Positions 8,646 through 63,862 of a DNA stretch of 64,000 nt are shown piece after piece (position 1 is the stretch's first letter; the number at the start of each line of letters is the position of its first letter). The notes under the pieces are model-generated. The model was given only the letters and a program-made list of their open reading frames with translations. It was not told the origin of the DNA and made no database searches. The position numbers and the translations under genes were made by a program. The stretch spans positions 1-64,000 of the IMG/VR virus record IMGVR_UViG_3300035156_000206; one strand, given 5' to 3'.

Positions 8646-8661
8646 GCACTACTCCTTAAAA

Positions 8662-22337: not shown

Positions 22338-22401
22338 GACTGCTTGTCAGCCATGCGGGGGATATTGTATAATAAAGAGTTGATCTCAAAGGGAAGCTGA
22401 T

Positions 22402-23370: not shown

Positions 23371-24245
23371 AAACTGTAGCTATTATTGGGGCTCGTGGGG
23401 TTGTATCTACGATGTTGCAGGCTAAGTTGGCTGATGACCCGGAAATTGTGGTTGCTGTTGTTGAGACTTCCTTGTTCATGTTGGCTCCCAATCCAAGGAT
23501 GGCATTAGCAGGTGCAGACTTGGTGGTTGTATGTACTGAGGAGGCTTTAAGCAGGGAAGTTGTTGCCAAAATCGATCCTGATATGGCTATTTTGGACATT
23601 AGTCCTGCGTTCAGGTGCGATTCTGAATGGGTATATGGGATGTCTACGTTGATGGGGACGAATCAGCTGATAAATGGGGCGAAGCGAGTGGCGAATCCTG
23701 GTTGTATGGCGACTGCTGCCATCTTGATTCTGCAGCCATTGGTTGAGGAGGAGTTGGTTGGTACATTTGATCCTTTGTATCTGGATGCGATGATTGGTTA
23801 TTCGGCTGGTGGTCGCAAGATGATTGCGAAGTATCAGGCTGGGGTTGCGATGAAGAAGCCACCATTTGAAATCATGACTAGTCTGGTTGAAGCGCACCCC
23901 CATGTTGGTGAGATCAAGCATGTTACTGGGTTGAGGGGTGATGTGGTATTGGCTCCGAAGATTGGTACCTACTTTAGTGGTATTCGGATGTCGATTATGG
24001 TACCAAGGACGTATGCTCCGTTCTTGTTGGGGATGTACAATTTCGCTTATGCTGGTACCGACATTGTGGTTGAGAACGACAACCCGAAGAAGATATGTGC
24101 TGATGAGATGGAGGGGAAGCCTGGAGCGATCATTCGGGTTTATCAGCATGGGGAATCGTGCCTTGTTGTGTGTACCATGGACAATTTGTTTAAGGGTGCA
24201 GTTGACACAGCCTATGAGAACATTGGGTTGATGTTAGGGATGTAA
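23367..24245 (+). CDS. argC: N-acetyl-gamma-glutamyl-phosphate reductase-like (ArgC/ASADH family)
   Basis: VAIIGARG Rossmann start, RVANPGC catalytic Cys, GYSAGG, HPHVGEI, DNLFKGA. Confidence 0.8.
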   Translation: MKTVAIIGARGVVSTMLQAKLADDPEIVVAVVETSLFMLAPNPRMALAGADLVVVCTEEALSREVVAKIDPDMAILDISPAFRCDSEWVYGMSTLMGTNQLINGAKRVANPGCMATAAILILQPLVEEELVGTFDPLYLDAMIGYSAGGRKMIAKYQAGVAMKKPPFEIMTSLVEAHPHVGEIKHVTGLRGDVVLAPKIGTYFSGIRMSIMVPRTYAPFLLGMYNFAYAGTDIVVENDNPKKICADEMEGKPGAIIRVYQHGESCLVVCTMDNLFKGAVDTAYENIGLMLGM

Positions 24246-24324: not shown

Positions 24325-25428
24325 ATGCCAGGAATTCAATACCATATCAAATACACGGACCCGTCGATTCCAGGAAAGACGCCGTTCGTTATTGAACCAA
24401 ATACAACAAATGGGCCATTGAGCCCAATCACAGCCGTGCCTGACCTGAATGCAACGTCATACAACACGTCTGTTACTTTGCCAGGCATGGGGCTGATCCA
24501 ATATGGTGAGCGTGTTGATGAAGCAATCGTTCACATCCTTGAGAATTTTGCTAGTGCTGGTGTTCCACCTGTTGCCCCAACTGTTGGGCAATTGTGGTTC
24601 GACTATTCTGTTCGTCTTCTGAAGGTGTATTCGCACAACGGGACAACTGGTGTGTGGAACTTCGTAGGTGACAATGGTACTGGTGGTGCTGTTACGGCAG
24701 CCATTGCAGCCAAAGTTGCTCGTGCAGGTGACACCATGACTGGTTTCTTGACACTCAATGCTGATCCAACATCACCACTCCATGCTGCCACAAAGCAGTA
24801 TATCGACAACAAGGCTATGACTCCTGGTCCAGCCGGTCCTCAAGGGCCAGCAGGATTGAATAGTACTGTTCCTGGTCCTCAAGGTCCAGCTGGTGCTAAT
24901 GGGGCGAACGGCGCTAATGGGGCAACTGGTGCAACCGGACCTCAAGGGCCACAGGGACCTCAAGGACCACAAGGCCCGCAGGGACCTCAAGGTGTTACGG
25001 GAGCAACTGGTGCGACTGGTGCAGCATCATTTGTTCCTGGCCCACAAGGTCCTCAGGGAGCAACTGGTGCGACGGGTGCAACCGGAGCAGCTGGTCCTGT
25101 TCCAACTTTGGTTGCTAGTGGATCGATTGCCACCAACTTCAGCTCAACAGCTGCGGCTCGTATTCTGATTGATACCGGCGTCGACATGGGTGGTGCGTGG
25201 AACGATGCATCAACGGAAGTTTGGCATGCAAATGCTACCATCTCTGGTGGTTTTTCGAGTGGTGGTGGTTGCTACGGAGTTGGGCTAGCAAGAATAGGTC
25301 ACTTGGATGGTCTTGGTGCAGGGTATGCGGATGGTCGCATCTACATCGTATTCGAGTGGGCACGATCGGGTGGTAGTGGATCGTTAACAGCAACATCAGT
25401 TTCATGGAAATTAACAAAGGTATCATAA
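24325..25428 (+). CDS. Collagen-like tail fibre/baseplate-associated protein
   Basis: YGE...HILENFA...GQLWFD N-terminus; HAATKQYID; long Gly-X-Y run. Confidence 0.85.
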
Positions 25429-32844: not shown

Positions 32845-33282
32845 ATGTTGACGTTTGTACAGTTTCAGGTGATACTGGATGTGTACAATGAGCAAACAAG
32901 GACAGTAATGGAAAGTAAAGAACAGCGGGCGATATTGAAGGCACGTAAGATAGTGCTTGGTATTGTTGACGCACCGAATGGCTCTCTTGCAGACCGCCTC
33001 AAGGCGGCTGAACGAGATGTCAAGGTGCTAGGAGCTGCGATTGCACTCTGGGTCGACAAGACCTCCCTTATGTATCAATATGTGGGCTGTGATCAGGATG
33101 AATGGCGCGAAGACATTCGTGCGTGGTTCGCTGCACAGCAGTTCTACGTCGATGATGACGTTAATGATGGCACAATGTTACGCTGTCATCTCAATAACGT
33201 AGGCTGGGGACGACATGTCATCCTTTCCTTCCGTTTGGGTGGTGCAAAGAAGAAAGGTACAAATCGCAATGAACCTATTTGA
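32845..33282 (+). CDS. Hypothetical protein
   Basis: 145-aa ORF. Confidence 0.7.
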   Translation: MLTFVQFQVILDVYNEQTRTVMESKEQRAILKARKIVLGIVDAPNGSLADRLKAAERDVKVLGAAIALWVDKTSLMYQYVGCDQDEWREDIRAWFAAQQFYVDDDVNDGTMLRCHLNNVGWGRHVILSFRLGGAKKKGTNRNEPI

Positions 33283-33499
33283 CGAACCAGAGTATCCAAA
33301 GCCAACAGGCTTTCGCAATGTGGCAGTTGAAGCACCAGTTGAGGAACCTGCAGTACCCATGCGAATGACTGTTGACGAGCAGGTTTGGCTTTCAGCATGG
33401 AACTCTGCCACTCTCCGGCCAGACAGCGTCGAGCCGAACTGTGCTGGATGGTGGGCAGACCACTGCCTCGATGAGTTTCACGCACGCTTCCGTAAATAA
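33269..33499 (+). CDS. Hypothetical protein
   Basis: 76 aa from MNLFDE. Confidence 0.7.
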   Translation: MNLFDEPEYPKPTGFRNVAVEAPVEEPAVPMRMTVDEQVWLSAWNSATLRPDSVEPNCAGWWADHCLDEFHARFRK

Positions 33500-33522
33500 C
33501 CAACAAAAGAAAGGTAGTACCA

Positions 33523-34161
33523 ATGAACGCCAATTTGTTATCCACCCGCTACGAATTCTCACCAGGGTTCCGCCAATACGAGAACGAAACGTTTGTAGCC
33601 ATCCTACAAAGCGCATTCGACCGTGTGTCTCACACTGCTGTGGTGAGCTCGCTACGTGACACAGACCATACCATCCGTCTGGCTGAAGCCCTACGTGAAG
33701 TAAAGAACGAGATCGAGCAGTTCCGTTTTCAGAACAGCTACCGCAAGGACGAAGTGTTCCTGACCACAGACCGCAACCTCGTCATCTCGACACGCAAACT
33801 GCTCCAATCGGCAATCTTCAAGTTCGACAGCCTGTTGAGTGATGTGAAGCTGGCCATTGAAACTCAGCTGTTCCTAATGAAACACACAGGCTCTGCAGAG
33901 TTGAACAGCCAGGTCATCATTGTCAACTCGTTCCAACAGGTAATTGATCCAGAGAACGTACTTCGTGGTGAACTGGCCGTCGACAACCTGAAGGCACTGT
34001 ACCAGTACTTCCTCAGTTTGTCGAAAAGCATGGCAATGCAAACGATCCGGGAGAACCTGGTCGAGCTCAACACCATTCAGCCAACCATCTCATTCGGTTC
34101 GAAGACCAGCAGCTCAGCCACAATGAACGAAGTAGAGTGGCCTGAAGCAGTTAAGTTCTGA
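33523..34161 (+). CDS. Hypothetical protein
   Basis: 212-aa ORF; AAGG RBS. Confidence 0.8.
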   Translation: MNANLLSTRYEFSPGFRQYENETFVAILQSAFDRVSHTAVVSSLRDTDHTIRLAEALREVKNEIEQFRFQNSYRKDEVFLTTDRNLVISTRKLLQSAIFKFDSLLSDVKLAIETQLFLMKHTGSAELNSQVIIVNSFQQVIDPENVLRGELAVDNLKALYQYFLSLSKSMAMQTIRENLVELNTIQPTISFGSKTSSSATMNEVEWPEAVKF

Positions 34162-34346
34162 TTTCAGCCCTACATCACTTCACCAGATATGTCAACTGAT
34201 ATTCGTTGATAAATTTTAAGATTTCCATTATAATAATCATATAGAGAAATTCTATGGGAATGATCAACGGTGGAAGCGTGGTTAAACACGTTTTCATCGG
34301 GGCCTTAGAGTTGTTGACTTAATGCAGGGTTGTTGGAGTAGATGTA

Positions 34347-34673
34347 ATGGGCAAAAAGACGAAAGAGGACAAGTTGAAGAACCATGGTGTTAAGAGATTT
34401 GAGGATCTCTATGGCATTGTGCTGACTCAACCACTTCACGAGATGTTGCTTGACAGGATCCGGACAAGGATCAAAGCGGAACACATTGACACCCAGAGTC
34501 ATCGGATTTCAATTTGGGCCATTACAATAACCAAAACTGATGTACCGGCTCTGCCTAAGAAGATCAAGGTGCCGGTGGTGTATGATAAACTGAGAAAGAT
34601 GGTCATCTCGGCATTGCCACCTGAGTGCGTTGACATTCATAACATCGGGAAGCATATCCACGAATGGACATAG
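34347..34673 (+). CDS. Hypothetical basic protein
   Basis: 108 aa; GGAG RBS. Confidence 0.75.
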   Translation: MGKKTKEDKLKNHGVKRFEDLYGIVLTQPLHEMLLDRIRTRIKAEHIDTQSHRISIWAITITKTDVPALPKKIKVPVVYDKLRKMVISALPPECVDIHNIGKHIHEWT

Positions 34674-34674
34674 T

Positions 34675-34992
34675 GTGAATGAGTTCAAAACGAACATTGA
34701 GATGATTGCGTTTGTACGGGCACAACTTGATGATGCATTGCCAGAGATTCGCTCCCGTGTTGAGAAACACTACCGCAATCGTAACCTGATAGCATTGCAT
34801 CACTCTTTGGGTGCCACGATACGAGACCAATTCGCATTGTGGCACCCAAGGCACCCTGTGTACAAAACCTGGCTTGCTCAAGGCTCTGATCCGGATAGCC
34901 CTTTCCACCCGGACCAGTACTCCATGGACGTAATGGCCCAAGCATGTGTATTAGCATTCGGCTCACTTCCTGAACCAGCATTGATTGACTAA
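34675..34992 (+). CDS. Hypothetical protein
   Basis: GTG start assumed; ends HPDxxS motif. Confidence 0.7.
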   Translation: MNEFKTNIEMIAFVRAQLDDALPEIRSRVEKHYRNRNLIALHHSLGATIRDQFALWHPRHPVYKTWLAQGSDPDSPFHPDQYSMDVMAQACVLAFGSLPEPALID

Positions 34993-35014
34993 AAGGCGCT
35001 ACGGCGCCTTTTTT
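34992..35014 (+). terminator. Terminator at end of plus-strand block
   Basis: AAAAGGCGC-TACG-GCGCCTTTTTT. Confidence 0.8.
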
Positions 35015-35199
35015 AATGTCCAAAGCACCCACTGGGTGCTTTTTCTTTTGTGGTTGTGTACTGCAAATAACAGAAGGATATACATTTATAACCACAATTT
35101 AACGCGATTTAACGCGTTTATACGGCGATTACAAATGATAAATGTGAATAGCTAAGAGAAGAAATTGTCAAAGAGGTGGGAATTGACGATAGACAAAAA

Positions 35200-35223
35200 G
35201 AAAGCACCCGAAGGTGCTTTTTG
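35200..35223 (-). terminator. Terminator at end of minus-strand block
   Basis: AAAGCACC-CGAA-GGTGCTTT. Confidence 0.8.
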
Positions 35224-35225
35224 TG

Positions 35226-36074
35226 TTAGGCTGCTACTGGTAACAACAAGTGCTCATCAACGACTTGGCGCTTGAGAATCTGGAAGTTGGGTTGATATGA
35301 AGGGATCTTATAGTACCCTTCGCCCAAGCAAGCAAAATACAGTTGCTCGCGCCACAGCGGCTGGCTTTGTGTCATCACATGTACAAATTCGGACTCCTCG
35401 AGTGACAACAGGAACTTGATTGGACGAACGATCAAGTGATGGTTCGGTTGCATCGCCAACTTCAGGTAGTCGTTGGTGGTCTTGATACCAGCAAAGTTGA
35501 GTTGCGCTTCAATGTCTGCACTATGGCCTTGGTAGTCGTGTTCAGCGTAGTACAGGAAGAGTGCCTTGTTCGGAAGAGCATTCTCTTCCAGAATCTGCAC
35601 CAACTTGTCTTCGTGAGTGCCAGTGATCTTAACGTCGTCGATGAACAGCAGCACCTTGCCTTCGATGAAGCCTTTGTTCAGGTAGAATTCGTCATTGTCG
35701 ATCAGTGCCCGGCGCTTTTCTTTCGGCAGGAACCCGTAGTCGTTGGTGTAACTGACTTTCCGGTGGATAATACTCCATTCGACGTGCGAGCCGTTAGCGT
35801 GCACCATCAGGTTATTCAGGTGCGAGATGAAGTGCTGTGCCATAACAGTGGCCGCGTTCTTCACGTAGTTGTAGGGACTTGGAATCACCACGCACTCATT
35901 GGCCAGCAAAATTTCGCTGTGCTCTTTGAACACGTGTTCAGCCAATTCGTAACCAAACTGGTGTGCAACCGAGTCTGATCCGAACTTGAGTTTGGAGTAG
36001 GACTCGGCACTGAATGGCAAATCTGCCATGGTGCTAAAGCGATGGACGGCACTGCTGATATGATTTGGGTTCAT
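35226..36074 (-). CDS. Type I phosphoribosyltransferase-like protein
   Basis: VLLFIDDVKITGTH PRPP-binding motif. Confidence 0.85.
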   Translation of the reverse strand: MNPNHISSAVHRFSTMADLPFSAESYSKLKFGSDSVAHQFGYELAEHVFKEHSEILLANECVVIPSPYNYVKNAATVMAQHFISHLNNLMVHANGSHVEWSIIHRKVSYTNDYGFLPKEKRRALIDNDEFYLNKGFIEGKVLLFIDDVKITGTHEDKLVQILEENALPNKALFLYYAEHDYQGHSADIEAQLNFAGIKTTNDYLKLAMQPNHHLIVRPIKFLLSLEESEFVHVMTQSQPLWREQLYFACLGEGYYKIPSYQPNFQILKRQVVDEHLLLPVAA

Positions 36075-36078
36075 TTTA

Positions 36079-36768
36079 TTATGGCATGAGGAGTTTAACG
36101 GTATCGGCCGGGTCCTTCACATACATTGGCCGCATGGATGCTTTGGTGGCACCGCCAACATCGCATATCTGGTTGTCACCCACGTGCATGACCAAGGCGG
36201 GTGCGATATTGGCCTGAGCACGAGACCTGGCATTTACCAGGATAGCATTGAAGAATGCGGAGCTCGGTTTGCTGTGGCCGAACGCATCGGAATACAGCGC
36301 AAAGTCGAATTGTGTGGGCCACTTGTCAAATAGCACATCTTGCATTGTGGCACCACTGATGAAGTTAGTGTTGCTGGCAATGCTGACATTGTAGCCTGCA
36401 CGCTTCAGTTCACCAATCATCTTTTTGATCTCTGGCAGTACGATGGGTGGGTAACGGCGAAACAGCGCACGAATCCCAGCATGTACTTCAAACATACTGG
36501 CCCTGTCATTGGGACCAATGTAATCGCCAAACTGATCGTAGAGGCGCTTCAGCACTTGTGGTGTTGATGGACCCGTACCTTCAAGTTCAGCTTCCTGGTC
36601 CACTTCTGTCTTGACCTGCGTGTACACCTGCCTGACGGTCTTATTTGTGAGACCGAGTACCATAGCAAGGTATGTGTTCCGCATCTCGGCGTACTCTGGG
36701 TTAGCACTGATCAAAGTGCCCCACACATCAAATGAGATGTGCCTGATACCAGCTAAATTGTAATTCAT
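36079..36768 (-). CDS. HAD-superfamily hydrolase
   Basis: SFDVWGTL, ASNT, KPS, HVGDNQICD motifs. Confidence 0.9.
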   Translation of the reverse strand: MNYNLAGIRHISFDVWGTLISANPEYAEMRNTYLAMVLGLTNKTVRQVYTQVKTEVDQEAELEGTGPSTPQVLKRLYDQFGDYIGPNDRASMFEVHAGIRALFRRYPPIVLPEIKKMIGELKRAGYNVSIASNTNFISGATMQDVLFDKWPTQFDFALYSDAFGHSKPSSAFFNAILVNARSRAQANIAPALVMHVGDNQICDVGGATKASMRPMYVKDPADTVKLLMP

Positions 36769-36886
36769 AGTGCTCCACTCACATTATTATAAGTTCCCAA
36801 CAACTTCTTCACTATACGGAAACTTTACAACTTTGTCAACAGTCCTCAATTAGTTGAGCACACAAAAAAGGCCCTTTCGGGCCTTT

Positions 36887-37078
36887 TTAGATGATTCTGT
36901 CACAAGCGGCGGAATCCAGAGCCTTCGCATACCCCACTCCGTATCCATGAGAGTAGCCCCGTTCGTAGGCATCTCTGCCTTTTGTCAACAGTTCCTCCTC
37001 CAGCTCAGCAATACGGGCCCGAAGCAATACTGGGTCTTCTTCCAGCTTCTCAACAAACAGGATCCTGAGGCTTTCCAT
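36887..37078 (-). CDS. Small coiled-coil protein
   Basis: start moved to MESLRI; AYERGYSHGY repeat. Confidence 0.6.
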   Translation of the reverse strand: MESLRILFVEKLEEDPVLLRARIAELEEELLTKGRDAYERGYSHGYGVGYAKALDSAACDRII

Positions 37079-37079
37079 A

Positions 37080-38429
37080 TTACACTCCGAAGTTGTGAGG
37101 GGCGATGTTAACCGAGTCGAACTCTCCACCGAATGATGGTACAGCAACTGAGTAGAACTGCGACTTCACAGAACCGTCTGGCACTTGCTTATCGGGACGA
37201 CTATGCTGACGGTCCAGCAACTGCTGTAACGATGCTGGGATGTACAAGGCAGTAACACGCATCCCACGCTGACGAGCCATATCGATGTAACGCTTTCGAC
37301 GTTTGGCACCAAGGTTGGTGTTATCTACCAAGATGTGCTTGTTGTCTTTGAACACCGCATTGATTGCCTCTGTCACATACGCATCGAACTCTTTCTCATT
37401 CGCTACCGCATATTCATAGGCGCTGTGGTAGTTGAAGCGGTTGCACTCGGGAGAGATCCCTTTCATCACGTCAACGTGGCCTAAAGCAAACTTGTAACGC
37501 AAGTCGTCAAGTGAGAACGGGACGAACCCTGGCAATGCCGCACGCAATGAAGACTTACCAGCACCTGATGGACCAATCATCATGATCATCTCAGGTGTAT
37601 CTTGTTTGTTGTTGATCTGTTCGTTCAGATGAAACACAGTAGCCCCCATGTTCTCCAGAGTAGATTGGCGTTCAGCAATCCAATCCATCATGCGACCGCA
37701 GTTACCAGCGTAGTCGTCCGAATCGCGTCCTTCTGTATCGCCCTTCAGCATGTTGAAGAACACCTCTGGTCCATTAGGCAAGAAGGTCATTACCAACGAC
37801 TTGTCAAGTGCCAGTACTTTGTCCTTGTTCTTCAGGCCGTAAGGCAAGTGATGCTCGATCATCCATGTGATGACATACACGTCCCAGATCGTGATCAGAC
37901 CTTCGAACATCGCCCAGTTGTCGATCACGTAGCCTTCGAACCTGCGGGCAGACTCAGCTTCGTGGCCAGCATATGAACGGTATTCACCACGCTCATCGGA
38001 GATCTTTGTTACTTCCGCTGCAGGCTTGCCTGTATCGTGGAACAGCAAGGCCAGCGATACCAGAACGATGTGGCGACGATTGAACCAGTTGTGCTCTTCT
38101 GCTACCCTGCGTTCACCTGAGGCAGCATTCAATCGTTCGATGTTGCCTGGTGAGAACGTATCCACACACTCCATCTCAAAACGCTTCAGCAATTGCTCAC
38201 GTTCCGAGTCATATTCAACCAGTGTTGGCTTTGGGAAGTGCTTGGCAGCTGCTACCAGAGTCATCTCGGTATGGAAAGCCACATTGGCTTCACGGTGCCA
38301 AGGAGAGTCCTCGACAGTGTTCTGCATCTCTTTCCAAAAATCTGTCAGCTTGAATTCCCCGATTAACGCTTGTAAACGCGTTAAATCGTATTCTAAGCGT
38401 GGTTTTGCTGTGGAATCAGTAGTAGTCAT
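37080..38429 (-). CDS. HD-domain plus P-loop (AAA_33/PNK-like) kinase fusion
   Basis: WH.E..V..HT and LFHDTGKP; GPSGAGKS and LVDNTN motifs. Confidence 0.85.
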   Translation of the reverse strand: MTTTDSTAKPRLEYDLTRLQALIGEFKLTDFWKEMQNTVEDSPWHREANVAFHTEMTLVAAAKHFPKPTLVEYDSEREQLLKRFEMECVDTFSPGNIERLNAASGERRVAEEHNWFNRRHIVLVSLALLFHDTGKPAAEVTKISDERGEYRSYAGHEAESARRFEGYVIDNWAMFEGLITIWDVYVITWMIEHHLPYGLKNKDKVLALDKSLVMTFLPNGPEVFFNMLKGDTEGRDSDDYAGNCGRMMDWIAERQSTLENMGATVFHLNEQINNKQDTPEMIMMIGPSGAGKSSLRAALPGFVPFSLDDLRYKFALGHVDVMKGISPECNRFNYHSAYEYAVANEKEFDAYVTEAINAVFKDNKHILVDNTNLGAKRRKRYIDMARQRGMRVTALYIPASLQQLLDRQHSRPDKQVPDGSVKSQFYSVAVPSFGGEFDSVNIAPHNFGV

Positions 38430-38588
38430 TTGAATCCCTATTCTTTATCAATTGGTTGTTGTTTCTTGATGCGAATCATACGCAAACAGAAGCAAGAAGT
38501 CAACCGATAAAAACAAGACCAGCACCTACTAGGGACGAAAAAAGAGCCCACCGAAGTGAGCTCAAGTCCTACTGCGAGAAACTAGGTT

Positions 38589-39656
38589 TTACAGCGCGAT
38601 TTCTACCGCACCAAAGAACGCACGCTCAGGTGAGCTGAATGGTGACTCGGCGATGTTACTGCCGATGTTTTGCACTTGGTCAGAAGCACAGTTGCGACGG
38701 AACACCAGTTCGTTAGCCAGCTTCTGCAAGCCAGCATCCGAGGAGTTGCCAGTTGGTGCGTAGTGAGTACACACTTCCGTGGCGATGTTCCATGCATCCA
38801 TCACAGTCAGATGGCTTGGCAACTGAGCCGCAATGGCACGGTTGTCGAGTGCTTCCATCTTGTAGTGACCCATCAAGTGGGCGTATGGATCAACGATCTT
38901 GTACATCCGATGGAGGCCGATGTTGTCTTGGTCCCCATCAGCCTTTTCCAGGCGGCCAGTAATGTGCTTGTCGAGGATCATCAGATCTGCAACAGACGCA
39001 CGTTGGATGGCCATTTCGCCCAGACGGGTTTGGATCTTGGTGTTGATTTTGTTCTGGAGTTGCAGGTTTGCGATCTCCAGGTGCTCATCCCAACGGTTCA
39101 CCAACGGGATCTGCATGTTGATGAACGGTGCGGTATTCACCATGTCGTTCATGCAGGCCACGCGACTGAGACGGAACACCGAACTCACGTTCTTCGCGAA
39201 CGGGTTCCAGTTGAATGACAGAATGGAGAAGAACTCCCCACCAGTCTTCATCATCGGGATTTCGATTTCGTCCTTGCTCCACACTTTACCGAGGCCGATG
39301 TCTTGGCTTTGGGTTCGGTTGAGCATACGGTGCGTCGCACGGTCCTGCTTGGTGGTGATCTCGGTATAGCCAATGACCTTCATCAGGTTGTCCAGAGCGT
39401 CGTCCGAGTGACTGAACCCAACATAGTTCTGGTCACGGAAGTCGACGAGCTGATCGTCCAGGAAGAAGTAATCACCACCAGTCAGGCGCTTGGCCAATTC
39501 GTTTGGCATGACCAGCTGCAGCTGTTGCGAAATCCGGCTGCTTGCTGAAAACTGGTGTTGATATTCGTCATTGACGGTAATGAGTGCGCAGACACCGGCA
39601 TGGCTGTCTACTGCTTCTACTTGAACATTAGCGTCGCGAATCATGGCATGTTGCAT
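38589..39656 (-). CDS. DUF932-like protein
   Basis: 355 aa; FRLSRVACMNDM resembles R.vC.NG motif. Confidence 0.6.
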   Translation of the reverse strand: MQHAMIRDANVQVEAVDSHAGVCALITVNDEYQHQFSASSRISQQLQLVMPNELAKRLTGGDYFFLDDQLVDFRDQNYVGFSHSDDALDNLMKVIGYTEITTKQDRATHRMLNRTQSQDIGLGKVWSKDEIEIPMMKTGGEFFSILSFNWNPFAKNVSSVFRLSRVACMNDMVNTAPFINMQIPLVNRWDEHLEIANLQLQNKINTKIQTRLGEMAIQRASVADLMILDKHITGRLEKADGDQDNIGLHRMYKIVDPYAHLMGHYKMEALDNRAIAAQLPSHLTVMDAWNIATEVCTHYAPTGNSSDAGLQKLANELVFRRNCASDQVQNIGSNIAESPFSSPERAFFGAVEIAL

Positions 39657-39732
39657 TTGTGTACCCCTTTGTGAAAATCGGAGATCTGAAATGACATCCG
39701 ATTTAGTAATCTTACAGGGTTTTCACAAAAAG

Positions 39733-40305
39733 TCAACGGAACCTTTTCAAGAGAGCCTTGAATTTTCGCATACCAGCAACCATCGGCCGGATTTTGGCAA
39801 CAGCAGCAGGTTCAGGTGCGCACGGATGCAGGCACGTCTTCGCACCTTCCACGGCTGGCTTTGGTACTTGGTAGTAATCGAACCGGTAGCATGGATAACC
39901 ACTGGACGAATTACAGTACTCGATGATGTGAATCAGAATCAACTTCGGATCATCGAAGTAGTCACGCAGGAAGTTCTGCATCGCCGTCCCGTCGTGGTAG
40001 CTGCTGTTGGCTTGGCGAACGTGTTTGTTCTCGCAGTCTTGGTACTTTTTGTAGTCCCAGGACTGCATACGATCGTGGTATGCCGAGCCATTAGCTTTCA
40101 CCTTGGCACCATAGTGGATGTACTGGACGATTGGGTCATAGCTGTACGGATGAGACTGCTTGGTCCGTTTGGCAACAACACCTTTCTCGTCCGTGTACCC
40201 GATTACCGGTTGGATAGGACCATCCCATTCAACATGGTCAATCATGTTCCCATGCAGATCGAACTTCATGTTGTAGATGTTCGTGTACTTACGTGATGTG
40301 GACAT
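39733..40305 (-). CDS. Hypothetical protein
   Basis: 190 aa; SHPYSYDP motif. Confidence 0.8.
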   Translation of the reverse strand: MSTSRKYTNIYNMKFDLHGNMIDHVEWDGPIQPVIGYTDEKGVVAKRTKQSHPYSYDPIVQYIHYGAKVKANGSAYHDRMQSWDYKKYQDCENKHVRQANSSYHDGTAMQNFLRDYFDDPKLILIHIIEYCNSSSGYPCYRFDYYQVPKPAVEGAKTCLHPCAPEPAAVAKIRPMVAGMRKFKALLKRFR

Positions 40306-40307
40306 GG

Positions 40308-40583
40308 CTATCCTTTCGGGTTCGGCCAGAGTGAATGTTCCGATGCGTAGATGGTTACGCCCTTGCTGTTGTATTCTAGCCGGTGCTTGCCACTCATGGC
40401 TTCGGCTGCATGCCTAGGATCTACCTGCAACATCCCATTGTGGGTCATAACGGCCTGCGTCAAGATACGCGTCATGAACGCGTTCTCGCGTAACAGCATC
40501 CTGTTTGCTTCCAGGATTGCTGTTATGTGGTCAACGCTTTGTTGAAGCTGATCGTTGACCTTGATGATGTCTCCGTGTGCCAT
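40308..40583 (-). CDS. Hypothetical protein
   Basis: 91 aa; AAGGA RBS. Confidence 0.75.
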   Translation of the reverse strand: MAHGDIIKVNDQLQQSVDHITAILEANRMLLRENAFMTRILTQAVMTHNGMLQVDPRHAAEAMSGKHRLEYNSKGVTIYASEHSLWPNPKG

Positions 40584-43688: not shown

Positions 43689-44228
43689 TTAGCCCTTTAT
43701 ATGAGGCCTCAGCGTCCGCTCATACAGTTTGATCACCTCACGTGCGAATTTACCTATGGTGTGGACGTTTGCTATCCCAGCCAGGTCAATGGTGACACCA
43801 TTCAATTCAGGGACTTTTGTCAGAGCCACAGCAAGAGCCAGATTGTCATTGAATAGCTTTTGCCCCAAAGAGTCGAGATGCTCTGGGCTAAATGGCACCA
43901 ATGGCTCGGCAAGGACGGGTGCGGGAGCAGGCGTCTTTCTTGGGCGTGGCATTTGCACATTGATCAGTGGGATGGCATTAGGTGGGCCACCAATTGACCA
44001 AATGCAGCTATGCCGAACGCCATTCAACATATACACATTTTCGACTACATGGAGTGAGTTGTGCATCTCAATGGGTTGCATGTGTTCAAGATGCTCTTCC
44101 CACACTACCGTAGCAGCAGCGTCAGATAACTTCGTGTCTACCCACTTACCGAAGATCGAATCCAGTTGGTCTTCCGTAAAGCCACCAGCTGGCACAGCAT
44201 ATGGATTAGGCTTCTGTTCCTTGCTCAT
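43689..44228 (-). CDS. Hypothetical protein
   Basis: start moved to MSKEQK, overlap with coaD stop. Confidence 0.75.
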   Translation of the reverse strand: MSKEQKPNPYAVPAGGFTEDQLDSIFGKWVDTKLSDAAATVVWEEHLEHMQPIEMHNSLHVVENVYMLNGVRHSCIWSIGGPPNAIPLINVQMPRPRKTPAPAPVLAEPLVPFSPEHLDSLGQKLFNDNLALAVALTKVPELNGVTIDLAGIANVHTIGKFAREVIKLYERTLRPHIKG

Positions 44229-44767
44229 GGTGCCACCTGTGTATAACATTGATTCTTGAAGCTCTGCTTGGCGCGGAGGAGACCAAATGTGTTGTTGTGA
44301 ACGTAAGGACGAACCCGCTCTTCCCAATTAGCCAATCCCACCAAACCACGAATGGCTGAGGAACTGATCTTGGCCACATCAGGAGGTGGCATCAGGAATA
44401 CGGTGCTGATGTGGGGAGCAAAGTCGTTATTGAACTGCTGCATCCCTTGTTCGTACGTGAAGTCTGCCGAATTACGAAGCCCACGGAACATTAAGGTGGC
44501 ACCATGCTTGTCACACAGGTCCACGATCATGCCGTTATCAGCATATACCACAATTACCTTCTTGGCGTCATCCCAAGGCAACTCTTCCTCAATTGCCGAA
44601 TTGACGGTAGCCCAGCGTTCCTTGTCCGTAAAGTAGGGTACGCCCTTGTCTGCATTGCGTGCAATCGCGACATACAAGGTGTCAACCATCTTGACGGCAC
44701 TCTTGATTACGGCCAAGTGACCTTTGGTGATGGGGTCATACGACCCTGATACGAGACCGATAGTCAT
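44225..44767 (-). CDS. coaD: Phosphopantetheine adenylyltransferase
   Basis: GSYDPITKGH, RGLR...DF.YE, ISSS motifs. Confidence 0.92.
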   Translation of the reverse strand: MTIGLVSGSYDPITKGHLAVIKSAVKMVDTLYVAIARNADKGVPYFTDKERWATVNSAIEEELPWDDAKKVIVVYADNGMIVDLCDKHGATLMFRGLRNSADFTYEQGMQQFNNDFAPHISTVFLMPPPDVAKISSSAIRGLVGLANWEERVRPYVHNNTFGLLRAKQSFKNQCYTQVAP

Positions 44768-46023
44768 GGTGCTCCTCCATCACGTGCACTGTTCTTGTTA
44801 AGATCAACAACCAGTTTCATGCGTTCCAGGATACCAACAATGTTTGCACGCGCTGGCTCTTCCAGATGTGCGTACGTCTCGGTATGGAACAATTTCGGGC
44901 GGTTCAGGAAGGCTGACATTGCCTGGATGCGACCAGTCGCAAACTGAAGATCGCTGTACTGGCTAAATTCGGCCCTGATCTGTTCATCTGACTCGATAAT
45001 GTCTGCTGTACTGCCCATACCGAGGCCACACAAATCCATATCCAGGAACAGCCCACAATCGTTCAGCAACTCAGGACGACTGAGAATGTAAGGCGACCTG
45101 ATCTGGTGGCCCTTTGTCGCACAGATCATTTCAGCAGCAATCTGTGCCGACCGCTTGGAGTGTTGTGTCAACTGACCATTGTGGTACGCGGTGAGTTGTT
45201 GGAACATCACATGTGCGCTGTCGTACTCACTGAGAGGGTACGATTCAGGATCTGTGCTGTACACGTAATCGTGCCACCAAATGGCAATCTCGACTGCTAG
45301 CGGATCGTGCATCAGCGGCTTGACCTTGTCGAACTGCTCAAAAATGTTGACGAGGTGCATGAGACCGTGGTAATGGCGGTGTTCTTCTGTGTAGGCAGCT
45401 TGGAGTTGCAACCACAAATCATGATTCCCAAATGTATTCAGAAATCGCAGTTCGAGAAGATCCATCTTCACGCCATTAGCAACTTCCGTAGCGTACTCGG
45501 CCATTTGCTCCAACGACTGATTAGTGTCAACAGCAATATCAGCCAAGGCTGCCTTCATTGTGCTGCTAAATTGTTCAGCCATAATGGCCTCAGCCTTTTC
45601 AACGCTGAAGCGGCCACGTTCGGCGATCCGTTCGCGTTGTGTGTCAATATCACAGAATACTGTGACCACAACTGCACCTTGATCGGCAAACATGATTGGG
45701 CCATCATGCTCGAAGTACAGAGGGAAGTCGAAGATGGTGTTATTGCCAATCATGGCATCGTGCATCCGCTGCTGCAGGTATTGCTTGGAGAGCCTTTCCA
45801 GCCATTCGCGGTGGATCTCATTCTTGAACACGAATGTTGAAATCTCGGCGCGGTCCGTGGTGCCAAAGCGGCCTTTCAGGGACTTGCAGAACATGTCGTC
45901 CAAGTACAGCTTGTGAATTTCGGCATCCACATCGAAAAGCTTATAATGTGGAAGACGGTCAGTGAGCATCTTGGTGAAGGTGCTCTTACCACAACCGATG
46001 TTGCCGGTGATAATGATGTTCAT
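44764..46023 (-). CDS. coaE: Dephospho-CoA kinase fused to HD-type phosphohydrolase
   Basis: ITGNIGCGKST, DAEIH, DRAEI, R...R.R, Q; C-terminal RHYH.L.H and WWHDYVY. Confidence 0.85.
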   Translation of the reverse strand: MNIIITGNIGCGKSTFTKMLTDRLPHYKLFDVDAEIHKLYLDDMFCKSLKGRFGTTDRAEISTFVFKNEIHREWLERLSKQYLQQRMHDAMIGNNTIFDFPLYFEHDGPIMFADQGAVVVTVFCDIDTQRERIAERGRFSVEKAEAIMAEQFSSTMKAALADIAVDTNQSLEQMAEYATEVANGVKMDLLELRFLNTFGNHDLWLQLQAAYTEEHRHYHGLMHLVNIFEQFDKVKPLMHDPLAVEIAIWWHDYVYSTDPESYPLSEYDSAHVMFQQLTAYHNGQLTQHSKRSAQIAAEMICATKGHQIRSPYILSRPELLNDCGLFLDMDLCGLGMGSTADIIESDEQIRAEFSQYSDLQFATGRIQAMSAFLNRPKLFHTETYAHLEEPARANIVGILERMKLVVDLNKNSARDGGAP

Positions 46024-46024
46024 G

Positions 46025-46624
46025 CTATGCCTTTGGTTCTGGTGGTACATAACCACGGAATGTGAAACTTACTCGTTCGCCACACTGGAACCCTGCTTTA
46101 GGAATCCTGTGGACGTGTGAAATCTGCATCCCTGGCTGCATCAGGCAGAGGCTGCCGTGTTCAAGCTTCAGGGACGTAACGTCCTTCTTGTCTTCATACG
46201 GAGCGAAATGAATCTCGCGTTCCGCACCGAAGGTGATCAACGCGATTGGGCGCGTGTGATCCATGATTGGGCTATTGTCAGCGTGCCAGCCAAGCCAATT
46301 GCGCTCATTCATATAACGATTGAGGAACAATACCTCAAATTGGGTACTGTAGAAATCTTGTACCGCAACTTGTGCACCACGCAAGAATGGTGTCCACTCC
46401 TGCTGTTCGTACGTGCGCTCCCCAACGCCTTCACCATAAGTGTAGGCGCCATCAATGTCAGCCACAAAGTATTCCATCCGTGTTGGAGTGCGGTCAGCCC
46501 AATCCAGTGTACCCAGGTGTGCAATGACGTTGTCACGCGTCACTTCTGGCATCCAAACCACACGGCCGGCTTCATCGAACGCGAAGTCCTTGAAATATTC
46601 AACTGGTACATTAGGGATCAACAT
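46025..46624 (-). CDS. alkB: AlkB-family 2OG-Fe(II) dioxygenase
   Basis: GWHAD (HxD), L.HGSL..M, H.IPK, RVSFTFR. Confidence 0.9.
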   Translation of the reverse strand: MLIPNVPVEYFKDFAFDEAGRVVWMPEVTRDNVIAHLGTLDWADRTPTRMEYFVADIDGAYTYGEGVGERTYEQQEWTPFLRGAQVAVQDFYSTQFEVLFLNRYMNERNWLGWHADNSPIMDHTRPIALITFGAEREIHFAPYEDKKDVTSLKLEHGSLCLMQPGMQISHVHRIPKAGFQCGERVSFTFRGYVPPEPKA

Positions 46625-46694
46625 AATTGTTCTTCTTGATTTGTATAGGAATTCTGCGATCTTAATATGTCAGAGTGAAAAAGTCAACAAAAAG

Positions 46695-47879
46695 TTAACG
46701 ACCTAACCGTTCGGCAATGTCTGCTATTTCACGAACCACGTTTTGCTGGTTGTGGTCAACGTACTTGATACCTAATTTGAGTGCACATGCTGTGTAATCT
46801 GGAACAAACAATACCGCATGCAACGTGTGCTGCAAATTGCGGCGCATGGTAAAGTCTGGGATCAGCGTCCCGTTCCCCACAGCAACAAGTCGCATGGCTT
46901 GCATATATTGCTCCATCTGAGTTGGATTACCAAGAACAGGTACTCCATAGTACACGCAAGCCGACACCAGACCATGAGCAGCATGAGACACTACCAGATT
47001 ACAGGTAGGCAACAACGCATCGAGGCGTACGGGAGTTGTGTGCAATACCATATTTGGTGAAGCGTACTGCTCCTTGATGTCATCCGGGAGACCTGGAATG
47101 TAACAAATTACATTGAGGTCAATTGCGGTCAGCGCATCGAGTAGGTTGCACACAGACTCATTGTACTGTACATACACAAATACGTTTTTCTGGCCACCTG
47201 CAGGCCACTTCACATCAAGTCCATGCTCCACGTCAAACAGAGGACCAAAATACTTTCCGTCCTGCCGATCAGGGTAGTGGTCAAACTCTGGAAACGTGAG
47301 CAGAGCCTCTTCGTCAGCGCGCATGCACGACGGAAGGTTGCTGAACATTGACCTACCATACATCAGCGCAATGGTATTAAGTATCCCTACTATCTGATCT
47401 TCTCCCAGCTTCAATGCCTCTTTGTTGGCTTTGTGCCGAAAGATTGGATATGTGCGATCCCATTTTGGTGGAATCTCGAAGCCAGTACCAATGTTGAAAG
47501 TAGGAATCCCAGCCATGCGTGCTGCAAAGAGGGCGGCGGGTGAATGGTCAAGCAGTACCACGTCAGGTTCTTCTGCTAGGAATATGTCGATCCAAGCAGC
47601 GATGGTGGGCTCCATCACATCAATCCTGCCGAACCCTTTGGACAACAGGATGTCGCCATAACTGGAAATCTTCCGCCCTGCTGGGCGCTGATCGATCAGC
47701 AAATGTGGAATGGTACCATATTCAAACCTATCCTCTCCTAGCACCGTGTGAGCAATTTCCATATCCTTCAGGAAGAAGATGATGGTATGACCACGTGAAC
47801 GCAACTCACGAGCGATCAGGCGTTGGCGAAGGATGTGGCCTAGATTGGCACCCAGTTCCCACGCAAATAGGAATTTCAC
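46695..47879 (-). CDS. GT-B glycosyltransferase (GT1/GT28-like)
   Basis: WELGANLGH, VVSHAAHG, GVPVLGNP...EQ motifs. Confidence 0.85.
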   Translation of the reverse strand: MKFLFAWELGANLGHILRQRLIARELRSRGHTIIFFLKDMEIAHTVLGEDRFEYGTIPHLLIDQRPAGRKISSYGDILLSKGFGRIDVMEPTIAAWIDIFLAEEPDVVLLDHSPAALFAARMAGIPTFNIGTGFEIPPKWDRTYPIFRHKANKEALKLGEDQIVGILNTIALMYGRSMFSNLPSCMRADEEALLTFPEFDHYPDRQDGKYFGPLFDVEHGLDVKWPAGGQKNVFVYVQYNESVCNLLDALTAIDLNVICYIPGLPDDIKEQYASPNMVLHTTPVRLDALLPTCNLVVSHAAHGLVSACVYYGVPVLGNPTQMEQYMQAMRLVAVGNGTLIPDFTMRRNLQHTLHAVLFVPDYTACALKLGIKYVDHNQQNVVREIADIAERLGR

Positions 47880-60175: not shown

Positions 60176-61387
60176 ATGTCACATGCAACAACTCCCGCCC
60201 TCAAGAAATACGATGTCATCTTTTTCATTTGCCGTGCCCAGCCATTTACAAATGGCCACAAGCACAACATTGATCAAGCGCTTGAACAAGCCAATCGTGT
60301 TGTAGTTGTCCTGGGTTCAGCCCACCGGGCGCGCGATGTCCGCAACCCATTCACATACGAAGAGCGCAAGGCAATGATTCGCGATGTGTATCGTGCTGAA
60401 GGCATCGACCACCGCATTTCGTTCCGCCCGCAACGCGACTATCCATACAGTGATACAATGTGGGCATCGTATATACAGAAGACTGTTAGCGACTACTGCT
60501 CGACTTACCATATGGGCCGAACGGACGTCAAGGTCGGCCTAATCGGCCACATGAAGGAAGACACTTACTACCTGAATCTGTTCCCGCAGTGGGACTTTGT
60601 TCCAGTGCAAGGCATGGGTGACACATCGGATATGAATGCGACGAATGTTCGCAAGGCGTACTTCGAAGAATCTACGTTCCATGGCCGCGAAGGTGCCGAG
60701 TATAGCCTGCTCGACTATATCGAGCAAGTGACCAATCGTGTTCCTGCCCTTGTCAGCTATTTTTTATATGAATTCAAGTACGGCGTGAAGCCAGGTAACA
60801 TCAGCTACGCAGAGCTGACCAAACCACGCACAGACGGACCAACTCCTGTGTGGCCTGCGCCTGAGACACTGACGGATCAGTATCGCAACCTCAAAAATGA
60901 GCACTTCCACATCAAGAAGTACCGTGCAGCATGGGATGCAGCGCCATATGCACCGATGTTTGTTACGTGCGATTGCCTGATCGTGCAAAGTGGTCACGTA
61001 CTGCTGATCCAGCGCAAAGCGGCACCAGGCAAAGGTCTCTGGGCAATCCCAGGTGGCTTCCTAAACCAAGGCGAACGGATCGTTGATGGTATCTTCCGTG
61101 AGCTGAAGGAAGAAACAGTCATCAAGGTACCAATGAAGGTACTTCGTGGTAGCCTGGTTGGCCAACATGTTTACGACCACCCTCAGCGTTCACAGCGCGG
61201 CCGTGTGATTACGCATGCAGGCGTTGTGCACCTCGAAGACGGTCCACTGCCGAAGGTAAAGGGTTCAGACGATGCTGCCAAGGCAAAGTGGTTCCCAATC
61301 AACGAAGTGTACAAGATGCAAGACCAATTCTTCGAAGACCACTTCTTCATCATTGAAGACCTTCTGAACCGTTTCCCAAAGAAGTAA
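60176..61387 (+). CDS. nadM: Bifunctional NMN adenylyltransferase / ADP-ribose Nudix hydrolase
   Basis: RAQPFTNGH, GSA...RNPF...ER; Nudix box GGFLNQGE...RELKEET. Confidence 0.92.
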   Translation: MSHATTPALKKYDVIFFICRAQPFTNGHKHNIDQALEQANRVVVVLGSAHRARDVRNPFTYEERKAMIRDVYRAEGIDHRISFRPQRDYPYSDTMWASYIQKTVSDYCSTYHMGRTDVKVGLIGHMKEDTYYLNLFPQWDFVPVQGMGDTSDMNATNVRKAYFEESTFHGREGAEYSLLDYIEQVTNRVPALVSYFLYEFKYGVKPGNISYAELTKPRTDGPTPVWPAPETLTDQYRNLKNEHFHIKKYRAAWDAAPYAPMFVTCDCLIVQSGHVLLIQRKAAPGKGLWAIPGGFLNQGERIVDGIFRELKEETVIKVPMKVLRGSLVGQHVYDHPQRSQRGRVITHAGVVHLEDGPLPKVKGSDDAAKAKWFPINEVYKMQDQFFEDHFFIIEDLLNRFPKK

Positions 61388-62224: not shown

Positions 62225-63862
62225 ATGAACACCATCGAAACCAAAATGAACACCATTGCAGCATCAGTCCGTCACGGATTTGAATCCATTCAAGACCAAA
62301 TCCAATCACTGCGCGGTGCATTGACAAGCGACTACAACGTTGCTCTTGATACCGATAGCTACAAACCATCGCACTTCCTGCAGTACCCGCCTAACACGGA
62401 ATACGTGTTCTCGTACGTCGAAGCTCGTGGATCGAGCGACAAGCCGTCGTCGAAGATCATGAAGTCCTTGGAAAACTACCTAACGCCAGAGATGCTGAAG
62501 CTGTTCAAGGCAGAGAATACCACTCAGCCATTCAACTTCACACTGATGTTCGGTCTCCAGTACATCAACAAAATGTACCTGAGCAAGCGCGTCACCAAAG
62601 AAATGGTCGATTACGCTGCCAAGGAATGGAAAGCTCACGGCGAGCCATTCAACTACGACGGTTGGATGTACATTGTCAATGAGCTGGAAGGCAAGTTGCC
62701 AGTTCGCATTCGTGCAGCCAAAGAGGGAGCCATCATCCCTCTCAAGAACGCGCTGATCACAGTTGAGAACACCGATCCCAAATGCTTCTGGCTGACTTCG
62801 TACATTGAGCCAGCAATCCTCCGCGTATGGTATGGCATCACTGTTGGTACACTCAGTTGGACCATCAAGCAGATCATTGCTGCATACCTGCGCAAGAGCT
62901 CAGATACCATGGATGGCCTGCTATTCAAGCTGCACGACTTCGGCTCACGTGGCGTCAGCTCGTACGAAAGTGCGGGCATTGGTGGTGCTGCTCACTTGGT
63001 CAACTTCATGGGCAGTGACACAATGCGTGCCATCCAGGTGCTGAAAGAGATCTACAATGTGGGCGAGGATGAAATGCCTGCATACTCGATCCCAGCTGGT
63101 GAACACAGTTCGTTCACTTCATGGCGCAAGGAATTCGAGAAAGAAGCTTACCGCAACATGATCGTCCAGTTTGGTAAGCCAGGCGCCTTGTTTGCTGCAG
63201 TGTCTGACTCGTACGACATCTTCAATGCAGTCGACAATATCTGGGGCAAAGAGCTGAAAGACGAACTGATTGCATCCGGTGCCACCGCAGTCATTCGCCC
63301 TGACAGTGGCGAACCAAAGGACATCGTCCTCAAAGTTGTGCAACTGCTGGACAAGAACTTCGGTTCGACCATCAACAGCAAGGGATACAAAGTGTTGCAC
63401 CCTTCAGTGCGTGTCATCCAAGGGGATGGCATTAACCTGGATAGCGTTAGCGAAATCTACGACACGCTGCTGGCTGCTGGCTATAGTGCAGACAACGTCG
63501 CCCTGGGAATGGGTGGTGGACTGCTGCAAATGGTCAATCGTGACACATTGCAGTTCGCAATGAAGTGCTCGGCTGCAAAGGTTGCTGGCGAATGGGTTGA
63601 CGTATACAAAGACCCAATCACCGACAGTGGCAAGCGCAGCAAGCGTGGCCGTGTTGGTCTGTTCCAGAACACGGTAACCAGCGAATATGCCACCATTCGC
63701 CTGGATGAAGTCACAGAGCTGAATGGAGAATTCGAGCACAAGGGCGAGATCTACATCGATGCGATGGACACCGTATTTGAGAATGGTGAAGTGCTTGTCG
63801 ATGAAAAGCTGGATGTCATCCGGGCACGATCGAACGATCACTACTTTATCGTCAGCCGTTAA
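62225..63862 (+). CDS. nadV: Nicotinamide phosphoribosyltransferase
   Basis: DTDSYKPSH, HDFGSRG, SDSYD, IRPDSG, VIQGDG motifs. Confidence 0.95.
   Translation: MNTIETKMNTIAASVRHGFESIQDQIQSLRGALTSDYNVALDTDSYKPSHFLQYPPNTEYVFSYVEARGSSDKPSSKIMKSLENYLTPEMLKLFKAENTTQPFNFTLMFGLQYINKMYLSKRVTKEMVDYAAKEWKAHGEPFNYDGWMYIVNELEGKLPVRIRAAKEGAIIPLKNALITVENTDPKCFWLTSYIEPAILRVWYGITVGTLSWTIKQIIAAYLRKSSDTMDGLLFKLHDFGSRGVSSYESAGIGGAAHLVNFMGSDTMRAIQVLKEIYNVGEDEMPAYSIPAGEHSSFTSWRKEFEKEAYRNMIVQFGKPGALFAAVSDSYDIFNAVDNIWGKELKDELIASGATAVIRPDSGEPKDIVLKVVQLLDKNFGSTINSKGYKVLHPSVRVIQGDGINLDSVSEIYDTLLAAGYSADNVALGMGGGLLQMVNRDTLQFAMKCSAAKVAGEWVDVYKDPITDSGKRSKRGRVGLFQNTVTSEYATIRLDEVTELNGEFEHKGEIYIDAMDTVFENGEVLVDEKLDVIRARSNDHYFIVSR

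Follow-up and report, generated by a model that had tools for sequence, protein, structure and literature searches.

Coenzyme A (CoA) is a universal cofactor, and the five-step pathway that produces it is usually regarded as fully known. The last two steps are catalyzed by phosphopantetheine adenylyltransferase (PPAT, CoaD) and dephospho-CoA kinase (CoaE) in bacteria, and by COASY in eukaryotes, in which the two activities are physically or genetically coupled. Both genes have also been met in viruses: coaD and coaE rank with the most abundant viral auxiliary metabolic genes of snow viromes, for a purpose that the authors of that work describe as unknown (PMC11097641), and coaE is listed as a viral auxiliary metabolic gene elsewhere (PMC13384950). 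In addition, phage LUZ19 encodes Qst, which binds CoaC and causes a shift in pantothenate intermediates (bioRxiv 10.1101/577908). Here we analyze the first 64 kb (64,000 nucleotides, hereafter the window) of IMG/VR virus record IMGVR_UViG_3300035156_000206, a linear record of 291,967 bp that is 84% complete by CheckV, in which coaD directly follows a gene fusing CoaE to a domain of the HD superfamily. The record comes from a jumbo phage without a close relative among GenBank phages: neither a blastn search with the locus in distant mode nor a protein search with the neighboring helicase returned a match there. The lineage is known from metagenomes only. The phage enzymes share their two reactions, folds and motifs with bacterial CoaD and CoaE and with COASY, and they are coupled as in COASY, but they are virus-encoded without the upstream pathway and their kinase bears an extra C-terminal HD domain. 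Viral coaD and coaE as auxiliary metabolic genes were already known; of the link to the HD domain we found no earlier account.

Our main result is the range of contexts in which this HD domain joins CoaD, CoaE or both, as a fusion or as a neighbor: every possible arrangement occurs. Besides the CoaE-HD fusion with a separate CoaD, found in the window and its relatives, there is a CoaD-HD fusion in a 462-kb phage (LR756500), CoaE followed by a CoaD-HD fusion in the ordinary cellular context of a Saccharibacteria metagenome-assembled genome (MAG), a CoaD-CoaE fusion followed by the HD domain in a Methanosarcinales MAG, and a CoaD-CoaE fusion next to the HD domain in two IMG/VR contigs of 467 and 113 kb. 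Moreover, CoaD-HD proteins form Atlas clusters in ciliates (232 members) and in bacteria of the candidate phyla radiation (CPR; 105 members), all three parts are joined in CoaE+CoaD+HD proteins of about 600 aa in another Atlas cluster (63 members), and an AlphaFold DB cluster holds a 611-aa "bifunctional coenzyme A synthase" with an HD-family domain. Ordinary genomes of bacteria, CPR members and eukaryotes contain the link as well, so phages did not invent it. Evolution has tied the HD domain to CoaD and CoaE in viruses as well as in bacteria, eukaryotes and archaea, the last on the strength of one MAG. A sequence-only reading of this stretch had proposed a joint function of the HD domain with the two CoA enzymes, and the repeated independent fusions and adjacencies strongly reinforce that view.

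In cellular genomes, coaD is fused to the HD gene or lies immediately upstream on the same strand in 10 of 77 HD loci that were recovered through the HD domain. These ten loci span at least five phyla and belong to Verrucomicrobiota, Planctomycetota, Acidobacteriota, Alphaproteobacteria, a Kapaibacterium, Saccharibacteria and an archaeal MAG, and no neighbor other than coaD recurs across phyla. That the HD-adjacent bacterial coaD is simply the housekeeping gene was considered and ruled out, as it is a second paralogue in four genomes. The large genomes of two Verrucomicrobiota, one Acidobacteriota and one Dongiaceae (G016-G019; loci L031, L041, L044, L059 and L122-L125) each encode two CoaD proteins above the equivalog cut-off, and the HD-adjacent copy is the lower-scoring of the two. 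In a maximum-likelihood tree, eight HD-adjacent coaD copies, including those of the four genomes, form one clade (98/97 support) separate from the housekeeping copies of the same four genomes. The CoaDs of phages lie on the side of this clade, as do the CoaD-HD fusions, although that deeper split has a support of only 86/46; phage CoaD thus differs from bacterial CoaD in grouping, with moderate support, with the second HD-linked paralogue and not with the housekeeping copy. In a Saccharibacteria genome of 0.8 Mb, the CoaD-HD fusion is the only coaD found. The literature searched holds no description of the conserved three-part module, of a second HD-linked coaD paralogue in bacteria, or of the cross-kingdom fusion pattern.

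The fusion protein has 19 full-length homologues with 33-51% identity, many of them on contigs of 75-280 kb, and a profile search across 1.84 billion representatives yielded among its best matches about 45 further proteins of about 400 aa, all those checked being CoaE with an HD-type C terminus. CoaD adjoins the fusion gene in all seven phage-like contigs inspected (L001, L097, L014, L015, L016, L098 and L102) and adjoins an unfused CoaE in two more IMG/VR contigs (L103 and L104). When the window and these nine contigs are compared, the CoaD-CoaE(-HD) pair is the sole feature common to all ten, and it is a conserved unit in phages. Wider synteny, running from an AlkB-like gene through the fusion gene and coaD to a helicase, is seen in the window, L001 and L098. 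Furthermore, four phages were compared in which no HD domain adjoins CoaD, although CoaE does so in three; an HD-family member is encoded elsewhere in three of the four. Brevundimonas jumbo phages are examples of CoaD with such a distant HD gene.

An efflux operon of outer-membrane factor, MFS and membrane-fusion genes with a TetR regulator stands beside the pair in L097 (3809-8372) and L014 (1-1662 and 2741-4893), and genes for a CDP-alcohol phosphatidyltransferase, a PlsC-type acyltransferase and CdsA lie directly upstream of the pair in L014, with radical SAM and RNA ligase genes downstream. Given the efflux and TetR flanks, a chromosomal location of the pair in L003/L097 and L014 was considered and rejected as unproven; the surroundings are mostly small ORFans and the GC content is uniform. 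In GenBank entry MW495066.1 ("Microcystis phage MaAM05", L100), the coaD region (32876-40346) is surrounded by rplA, rplK, nusG, secE and tRNA-Trp, and looks like bacterial chromosome rather than phage.

The identity of the two synthetic enzymes is well defined. Both calls rest on matches to family-level HMMs, in long open frames that relatives keep, and so are not chance ORFs. CoaD scores 131.1 bits on TIGR01510 (an NCBI equivalog model with a cut-off of 103.3), all 34 of its matches in a PDB sequence search are PPATs, and its motifs align with those of solved PPATs. It keeps GSYDPITKGH (residues 8-17), RGLRNSADFTYE (95-106) and ISSSAIRG (134-141), so that the (T/H)xGH nucleotidyltransferase motif, RxxxDFxYE and ISSxxxR are all present. 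Residues 3-174 of the fusion protein score 69.7 bits on TIGR00152 (equivalog cut-off 65.55) and 66.6 bits on PF01121 (cut-off 27); the P-loop GNIGCGKST is at residues 7-15, and the DxD aspartate D33 and the lid arginines R132 and R136 are invariant among homologues. In a Foldseek search of the PDB, the best 26 matches are dephospho-CoA kinases that cover the whole CoaE chain, with a target TM of up to 0.86. Equivalog scores, catalytic motifs and the CoaE fold together argue that both terminal steps of CoA synthesis are encoded, and as far as sequence can tell they look intact. Thus, the coupled coaD and coaE-HD genes that the sequence-only reading had called at this locus stand, on the evidence of their ORFs, equivalog scores, catalytic motifs and overlapping stop and start codons.

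These matches also bear on whether the module concerns CoA at all. A P-loop kinase, a phosphoesterase and a nucleotidyltransferase might in principle make up a Pnkp-like system that heals or modifies nucleic-acid ends, since a kinase joined to a phosphoesterase resembles T4 Pnkp or HD-Pnk, standalone phage members of the HD family often lie beside PNKP, RNA ligase and Thg1 genes, an RNA ligase is encoded 4 kb downstream in L014, and the upstream neighbor in the window is AlkB-like. We regard this as extremely unlikely, because both enzymes pass the CoaD and CoaE equivalog models with PPAT substrate motifs intact, the kinase domain matches whole CoaE structures (target TM 0.8-0.86), and the only coaD found in the 0.8-Mb Saccharibacteria genome is a CoaD-HD fusion.

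As for the HD domain, residues 207-398 of the fusion protein match phrog_19425, annotated "phosphohydrolase", at 7.8e-25, but no Pfam family, PDEase_I (PF00233) and PF01966 included, reaches an E value of 0.01 with the domain; PF01966 is matched weakly in a phage relative only (E 0.004) and not in the window protein, and a PDB sequence search with the HD profile gave no match. Nevertheless, the motif Y218-H219-x3-H223 ... H251-D252 ... H306 ... D328-x-D330 is invariant in the 19 homologues, and the modeled domain (pLDDT 95) carries this H ... HD ... D metal motif on an all-helical fold, as expected of the HD superfamily. The corresponding family profile comprises 15,555 clusters (50% identity, E up to 0.001). 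Most are proteins of about 200-230 aa that stand alone, and their names in databases are generic only, such as "metal-dependent HD superfamily phosphohydrolase".

By structure, the nearest solved folds are the catalytic domains of class I cyclic-nucleotide phosphodiesterases (PDEs), which align over about 215 of 234 residues with 12-18% identity at a VIA-align Z of 14.6, in a range (Z of about 13-14) that the tool warns may be generic for helical domains; Foldseek matches the same enzymes at an E value of about 2e-3. Next come the HD hydrolases 2pq7, YpgQ and YedJ, of unknown or nucleotide-directed function, at Z 9.5-12. All of these best structural matches extend over almost the whole domain and share its YHxxxH ... 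HD ... D layout, but identity to the class I PDEs is low, and in genomes the domain is partnered by enzymes of CoA synthesis and not by cyclases. In view of the warning on Z values, we take the fold similarity as a superfamily placement and not as a functional call. Were the domain indeed a phosphodiesterase of cyclic or other signaling nucleotides, possibly with an anti-signaling role, its fusion to CoaE would be incidental and only CoaD and CoaE would concern CoA. The nearest folds point that way, as do some members of a viral Atlas cluster of the HD family that match Pfam PDEase_I, three cellular loci in which the HD gene adjoins an adenylate/guanylate cyclase and two in which it adjoins a cyclic-nucleotide (cNMP)-binding protein. 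However, chance hardly accounts for fusions that arose independently in unrelated lineages and involve CoaD, CoaE or the two together, and a Z of 14 for an all-helical domain is barely above the level warned of as generic, which makes this reading very unlikely.

A more specific proposal of the sequence-only reading, that the HD domain strips acyl carrier protein (ACP) in the manner of AcpH to feed CoaD, was not sustained as regards a relationship to AcpH. The discoverers of AcpH (PF04336) reportedly placed it in the HD superfamily, and the enzyme forms 4'-phosphopantetheine, the substrate of CoaD, a role that we propose in general terms for the HD domain as well. The two differ in having no sequence similarity: hhalign gives a probability of 0.2% for the HD profile against Marinobacter AcpH, and AcpH is absent among the fold matches of the domain in Swiss-Prot models and the PDB. 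Moreover, the domain is net acidic (16 K+R vs 28 D+E) and therefore ill-suited to dock acidic ACP. Profile comparison, fold search and charge thus refute membership of the AcpH family. A PF04336 search of 12 HD-bearing bacterial genomes found no AcpH in 11 of them, the single match being a separate true acpH; this would fit a replacement of AcpH in function, although AcpH is rare in any case, occurring in 1 of 14 control genomes. Similarly, no carrier protein or AcpS was found in the 0.8-Mb Saccharibacteria genome with the CoaD-HD fusion, whose completeness is not established, and the absence of ACP there carries little weight because the HD domain occurs in only 3 of 81 Saccharibacteria-class genomes. 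An activity analogous to that of AcpH is neither supported nor excluded by these data.

A reverse activity of the HD domain is another option that its fold invites. As a CoA 3'-phosphatase, for example, it would form a kinase/phosphatase pair with CoaE that sets the ratio of CoA to dephospho-CoA, for instance providing dephospho-CoA for RNA 5' capping, or it would allow CoA to be drained to 4'-phosphopantetheine via the reversible CoaD reaction. Mutually reversing pairs of a transferase and an HD hydrolase are known in GlnD and SpoT, both of which are among the distant fold matches, and the closest folds, those of class I PDEs, belong to enzymes that bind a ribose 3'-phosphate ester. There is also a precedent in MESH1, the metazoan SpoT homologue, an HD-superfamily enzyme that acts on CoA as a 3'-phosphatase (PMC13221220). 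However, MESH1 belongs to another HD subfamily and is not fused to CoA-synthesis enzymes, and the likeness of our domain to the SpoT/small-alarmone-hydrolase group, in which MESH1 is a known relative, reaches a Z of only about 7. A constitutive fusion of kinase and phosphatase would in addition burn ATP in a futile cycle, and the most widespread partner of the HD domain is CoaD, not CoaE. We consider this role quite unlikely.

The rest of the pathway does not accompany the terminal enzymes. In the 291,967-bp record we found no match to the CoaBC families PF04127 and PF02441, to type III or type I pantothenate kinases (PF03309 and TIGR00554), or to carrier-protein (PF00550) or AcpS-type (PF01648) families, and the same family searches were positive in most or all control genomes. 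Likewise, the DFP (coaBC) family has no match in 15 related viral records, nine of which are at least 90% complete; three of those nine (G001-G003) are complete, terminally repeated and carry CoaD and CoaE. The absence of coaA, coaX and coaBC noted earlier for the window therefore extends to the whole 292-kb record, and the search of the rest of the genome for coaA and coaBC, which the sequence-only reading had recommended, revealed no de novo CoA pathway as far as the data reach (84% of the genome).

CoaD and CoaE without matches to the de novo pathway amount to the salvage-steps-only pattern of NARP-like cofactor reconstitution. In NARP2-type reconstitution of NAD+, which proceeds through NAMPT and NMNAT, the phage likewise brings genes for no more than the final salvage steps towards an adenine-dinucleotide-like cofactor, and the window does hold, as had been read from the sequence, NAMPT together with an NMNAT-Nudix fusion, 15-18 kb from the coaD/CoaE-HD locus (Table 1). 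It could be argued by analogy that the module rebuilds CoA after an immune effector or toxin has cleaved or depleted it, as NAMPT and NMNAT do for NAD+, and in one virome study coaD and coaE were indeed abundant together with NAMPT, nadM and nadR as viral auxiliary metabolic genes (PMC11097641). However, NAD+-depleting defenses are known, whereas our searches of the literature on COG4339, on fusions of HD domains with dephospho-CoA kinase, and on CoA-depleting or CoA-cleaving defenses returned nothing relevant. In further contrast to the NAD+ system, cellular genomes have the CoA module too, likewise as a unit, and counter-defense makes no sense for a CoaD/HD pairing in bacterial chromosomes, CPR bacteria and eukaryotes. 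Nor are any defense or anti-defense genes conserved beside the pair in the ten contigs compared. The co-occurrence with NAMPT is itself unspecific: NAMPT is present in 10-11 of the 15 related huge-phage records, with or without CoaD and CoaE, it occurs in HD-only records too, and it is generally common in jumbo phages (PMC11662467). Because NAMPT is present irrespective of CoaD and CoaE, its presence in the window adds little. A counter-defense role is thus unlikely, and the earlier suggestion of CoA rebuilding against a CoA-cleaving defense or toxin gained no support; nothing we found links the module to a defense system.

Two observations on NAD and Nudix genes may be added here. In the related record G009, the NAMPT gene is about 4 kb from the HD gene. 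The present phage encodes a second, small Nudix protein outside the window (G000:C1:253545-253880, minus strand), with an intact Nudix box and no CoA-pyrophosphatase-type motif that could be seen by eye.

Taken together, we lean, with moderate confidence, towards reading the locus as a self-contained salvage module for the end of the CoA pathway, leading from 4'-phosphopantetheine to CoA, with the HD domain acting one step before CoaD. In this scheme, CoaD would adenylylate 4'-phosphopantetheine to dephospho-CoA, and the N-terminal CoaE domain of the fusion would phosphorylate the 3'-OH to yield CoA. As the phage has no earlier CoA steps, the substrate must come from the host. E. coli holds a pool of 4'-phosphopantetheine fed by turnover of the ACP prosthetic group, and its CoaD is feedback-controlled by CoA. 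For the HD domain, we infer that substrate supply or clean-up is the most likely task, in that it would release or regenerate 4'-phosphopantetheine from a phosphodiester- or pyrophosphate-linked precursor. A position before CoaD is favored because the linear order HD, CoaD, CoaE fits every gene arrangement seen and because consecutive enzymes are the commonest fusion partners. The bacterial pairs of the second CoaD with the HD domain would, by the same scheme, hand dephospho-CoA to the housekeeping CoaE. For the phage, the likely benefit is that host 4'-phosphopantetheine would be drawn into CoA, and CoA kept or raised during infection despite host feedback.

The sporadic distribution of the domain and its fusions to pathway enzymes would also fit a salvage or damage-control enzyme, by analogy with the phosphatase domain of PANK4. 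PANK4 is a pantothenate kinase fused to a DUF89 phosphatase, which is metal-dependent and acts on 4'-phosphopantetheine-type metabolites. It shows that a hydrolase for regulation or damage control may be joined to the CoA pathway, but it has an unrelated fold, belongs to another step of the pathway and is eukaryotic.

Several observations weigh against a dedicated role in CoA salvage. No solved or characterized close relative of the HD domain was found by sequence or fold searches, and the family is not exclusive to CoA, most of its members being standalone. Some of its cellular neighbors are the cyclases and cNMP-binding proteins mentioned above. The family is also fused to the N terminus of CobL-type precorrin methyltransferases (P0167-P0169, 611-682 aa), an arrangement unrelated to CoA, and a word-indexed protein search with the HD region alone returned three matches, all of them HD-CobL fusions. 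Phage members frequently stand among RNA-repair and NAD genes, as seen for the standalone HD genes of huge phages (L105-L121, IMG/VR), which often lie amid PNKP, RNA ligase, Thg1, NAMPT, NAD kinase, NADAR and Nudix genes. Furthermore, the complete phage G003 encodes CoaD and CoaE and no HD domain, so the domain is dispensable. Finally, the kinase passes its equivalog cut-off only narrowly, and the record, at 84% completeness, may leave further genes of this phage outside it.

Beyond the locus itself, a broader scenario may be drawn, which we hold to be possible but doubtful. The HD family would be a widespread, unrecognized CoA salvage or repair enzyme that, with a dedicated CoaD paralogue (and CoaE), forms a recycling pathway in bacteria, CPR and protists. 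It would be PDE-like and would regenerate 4'-phosphopantetheine, drawing either on holo-carrier proteins or on a product of CoA breakdown, for instance a cyclic phosphopantetheine. Huge phages would have captured the pathway to turn host pools containing 4'-phosphopantetheine into CoA, possibly stopping host fatty-acid synthesis or countering an as yet undescribed CoA-directed defense.

The evidence as a whole points to an undescribed CoA salvage step and not to a demonstrated anti-defense system. The repeated joining of a large phosphoesterase family to the last two CoA enzymes is a concrete lead to a missing step of salvage, recycling or repair. In addition, conserved modules for the end of the CoA pathway accompany NAD+ salvage genes in jumbo phages, and this delimits the genes with which to ask if phages maintain cofactors as a general support of metabolism or as a counter-defense.

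The coordinates of the locus and of the NAD genes are collected in Table 1. For the fusion gene, a longer GTG-initiated frame reaches 46056, but the ATG listed is taken as the real start because homologues begin at MNI(I/V)ITGNIG and because this ATG lies 1 nt past an upstream TAG. The overlap between the fusion gene and coaD is, as read from the sequence, a case of translational coupling. The AlkB-like gene, which ends 1 nt before the start of the fusion gene and is syntenic in L001 and L098, looks like part of one translationally coupled block with the fusion gene, coaD and the 179-aa ORF that follows. This last ORF has no Pfam or PHROG match, is missing from the syntenic relatives L001 and L098, and has no match in the eight other phage-like contigs compared. 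A scan of the region for promoters and terminators gave matches no commoner than in shuffled sequence. Just upstream of the AlkB-like gene, 46695-47879 (minus strand) encodes an EryCIII/UDP-glycosyltransferase-like protein of 394 aa.

Table 1. Features of the CoA locus and of the NAD genes, in window coordinates.
Feature	Coordinates	Strand	Extent	Basis or remark
179-aa ORF	43689..44228	-	179 aa	ATG overlaps coaD stop (ATGA)
coaD, phosphopantetheine adenylyltransferase	44225..44767	-	180 aa	
ATGA overlap	44764..44767	-		Fusion-gene stop and coaD start share bases; GGAGGAG upstream; read directly
CoaE-HD fusion gene	44764..46023	-	419 aa	ORF; AF2 model pLDDT 93
HD/PDE-superfamily metal phosphoesterase domain	44788..45441	-	residues 195-412 of fusion	Predicted
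CoaE (dephospho-CoA kinase) domain	45469..46023	-	residues 1-185 of fusion	
AlkB-like 2OG-Fe(II) oxygenase	46025..46624	-		PF13532 2.6e-15; phrog_21963 3.5e-54
Sigma-70-like promoter match	46659..46687	-		Weak; upstream of AlkB-like gene
NMNAT-Nudix fusion	60233..61327	+	450-aa open frame	PF01467 and PF00293 in one frame
NAMPT	62924..63676	+	549-aa open frame	PF04095, 194.7 bits; family-match coordinates

Elsewhere in the window, six tRNA genes (Met x2, Thr, Arg and Ser x2) and a permuted tmRNA with the tag peptide ANDSQFKVAAYA are found at 2477-5827 and 8650-9044, both on the minus strand. A sharp GC-skew spike (+0.40), with an AT skew of -0.21, marks 22001-24000, and the ORF at 22402-23370 (plus strand) has the look of an M23-type peptidase by eye. 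Within the ORF at 24325-25428 (plus strand), which is probably a fiber protein, tandem 9-nt GGACCTCAA units at 24937-24992 code for Gly-Pro-Gln and give a collagen-like stretch.

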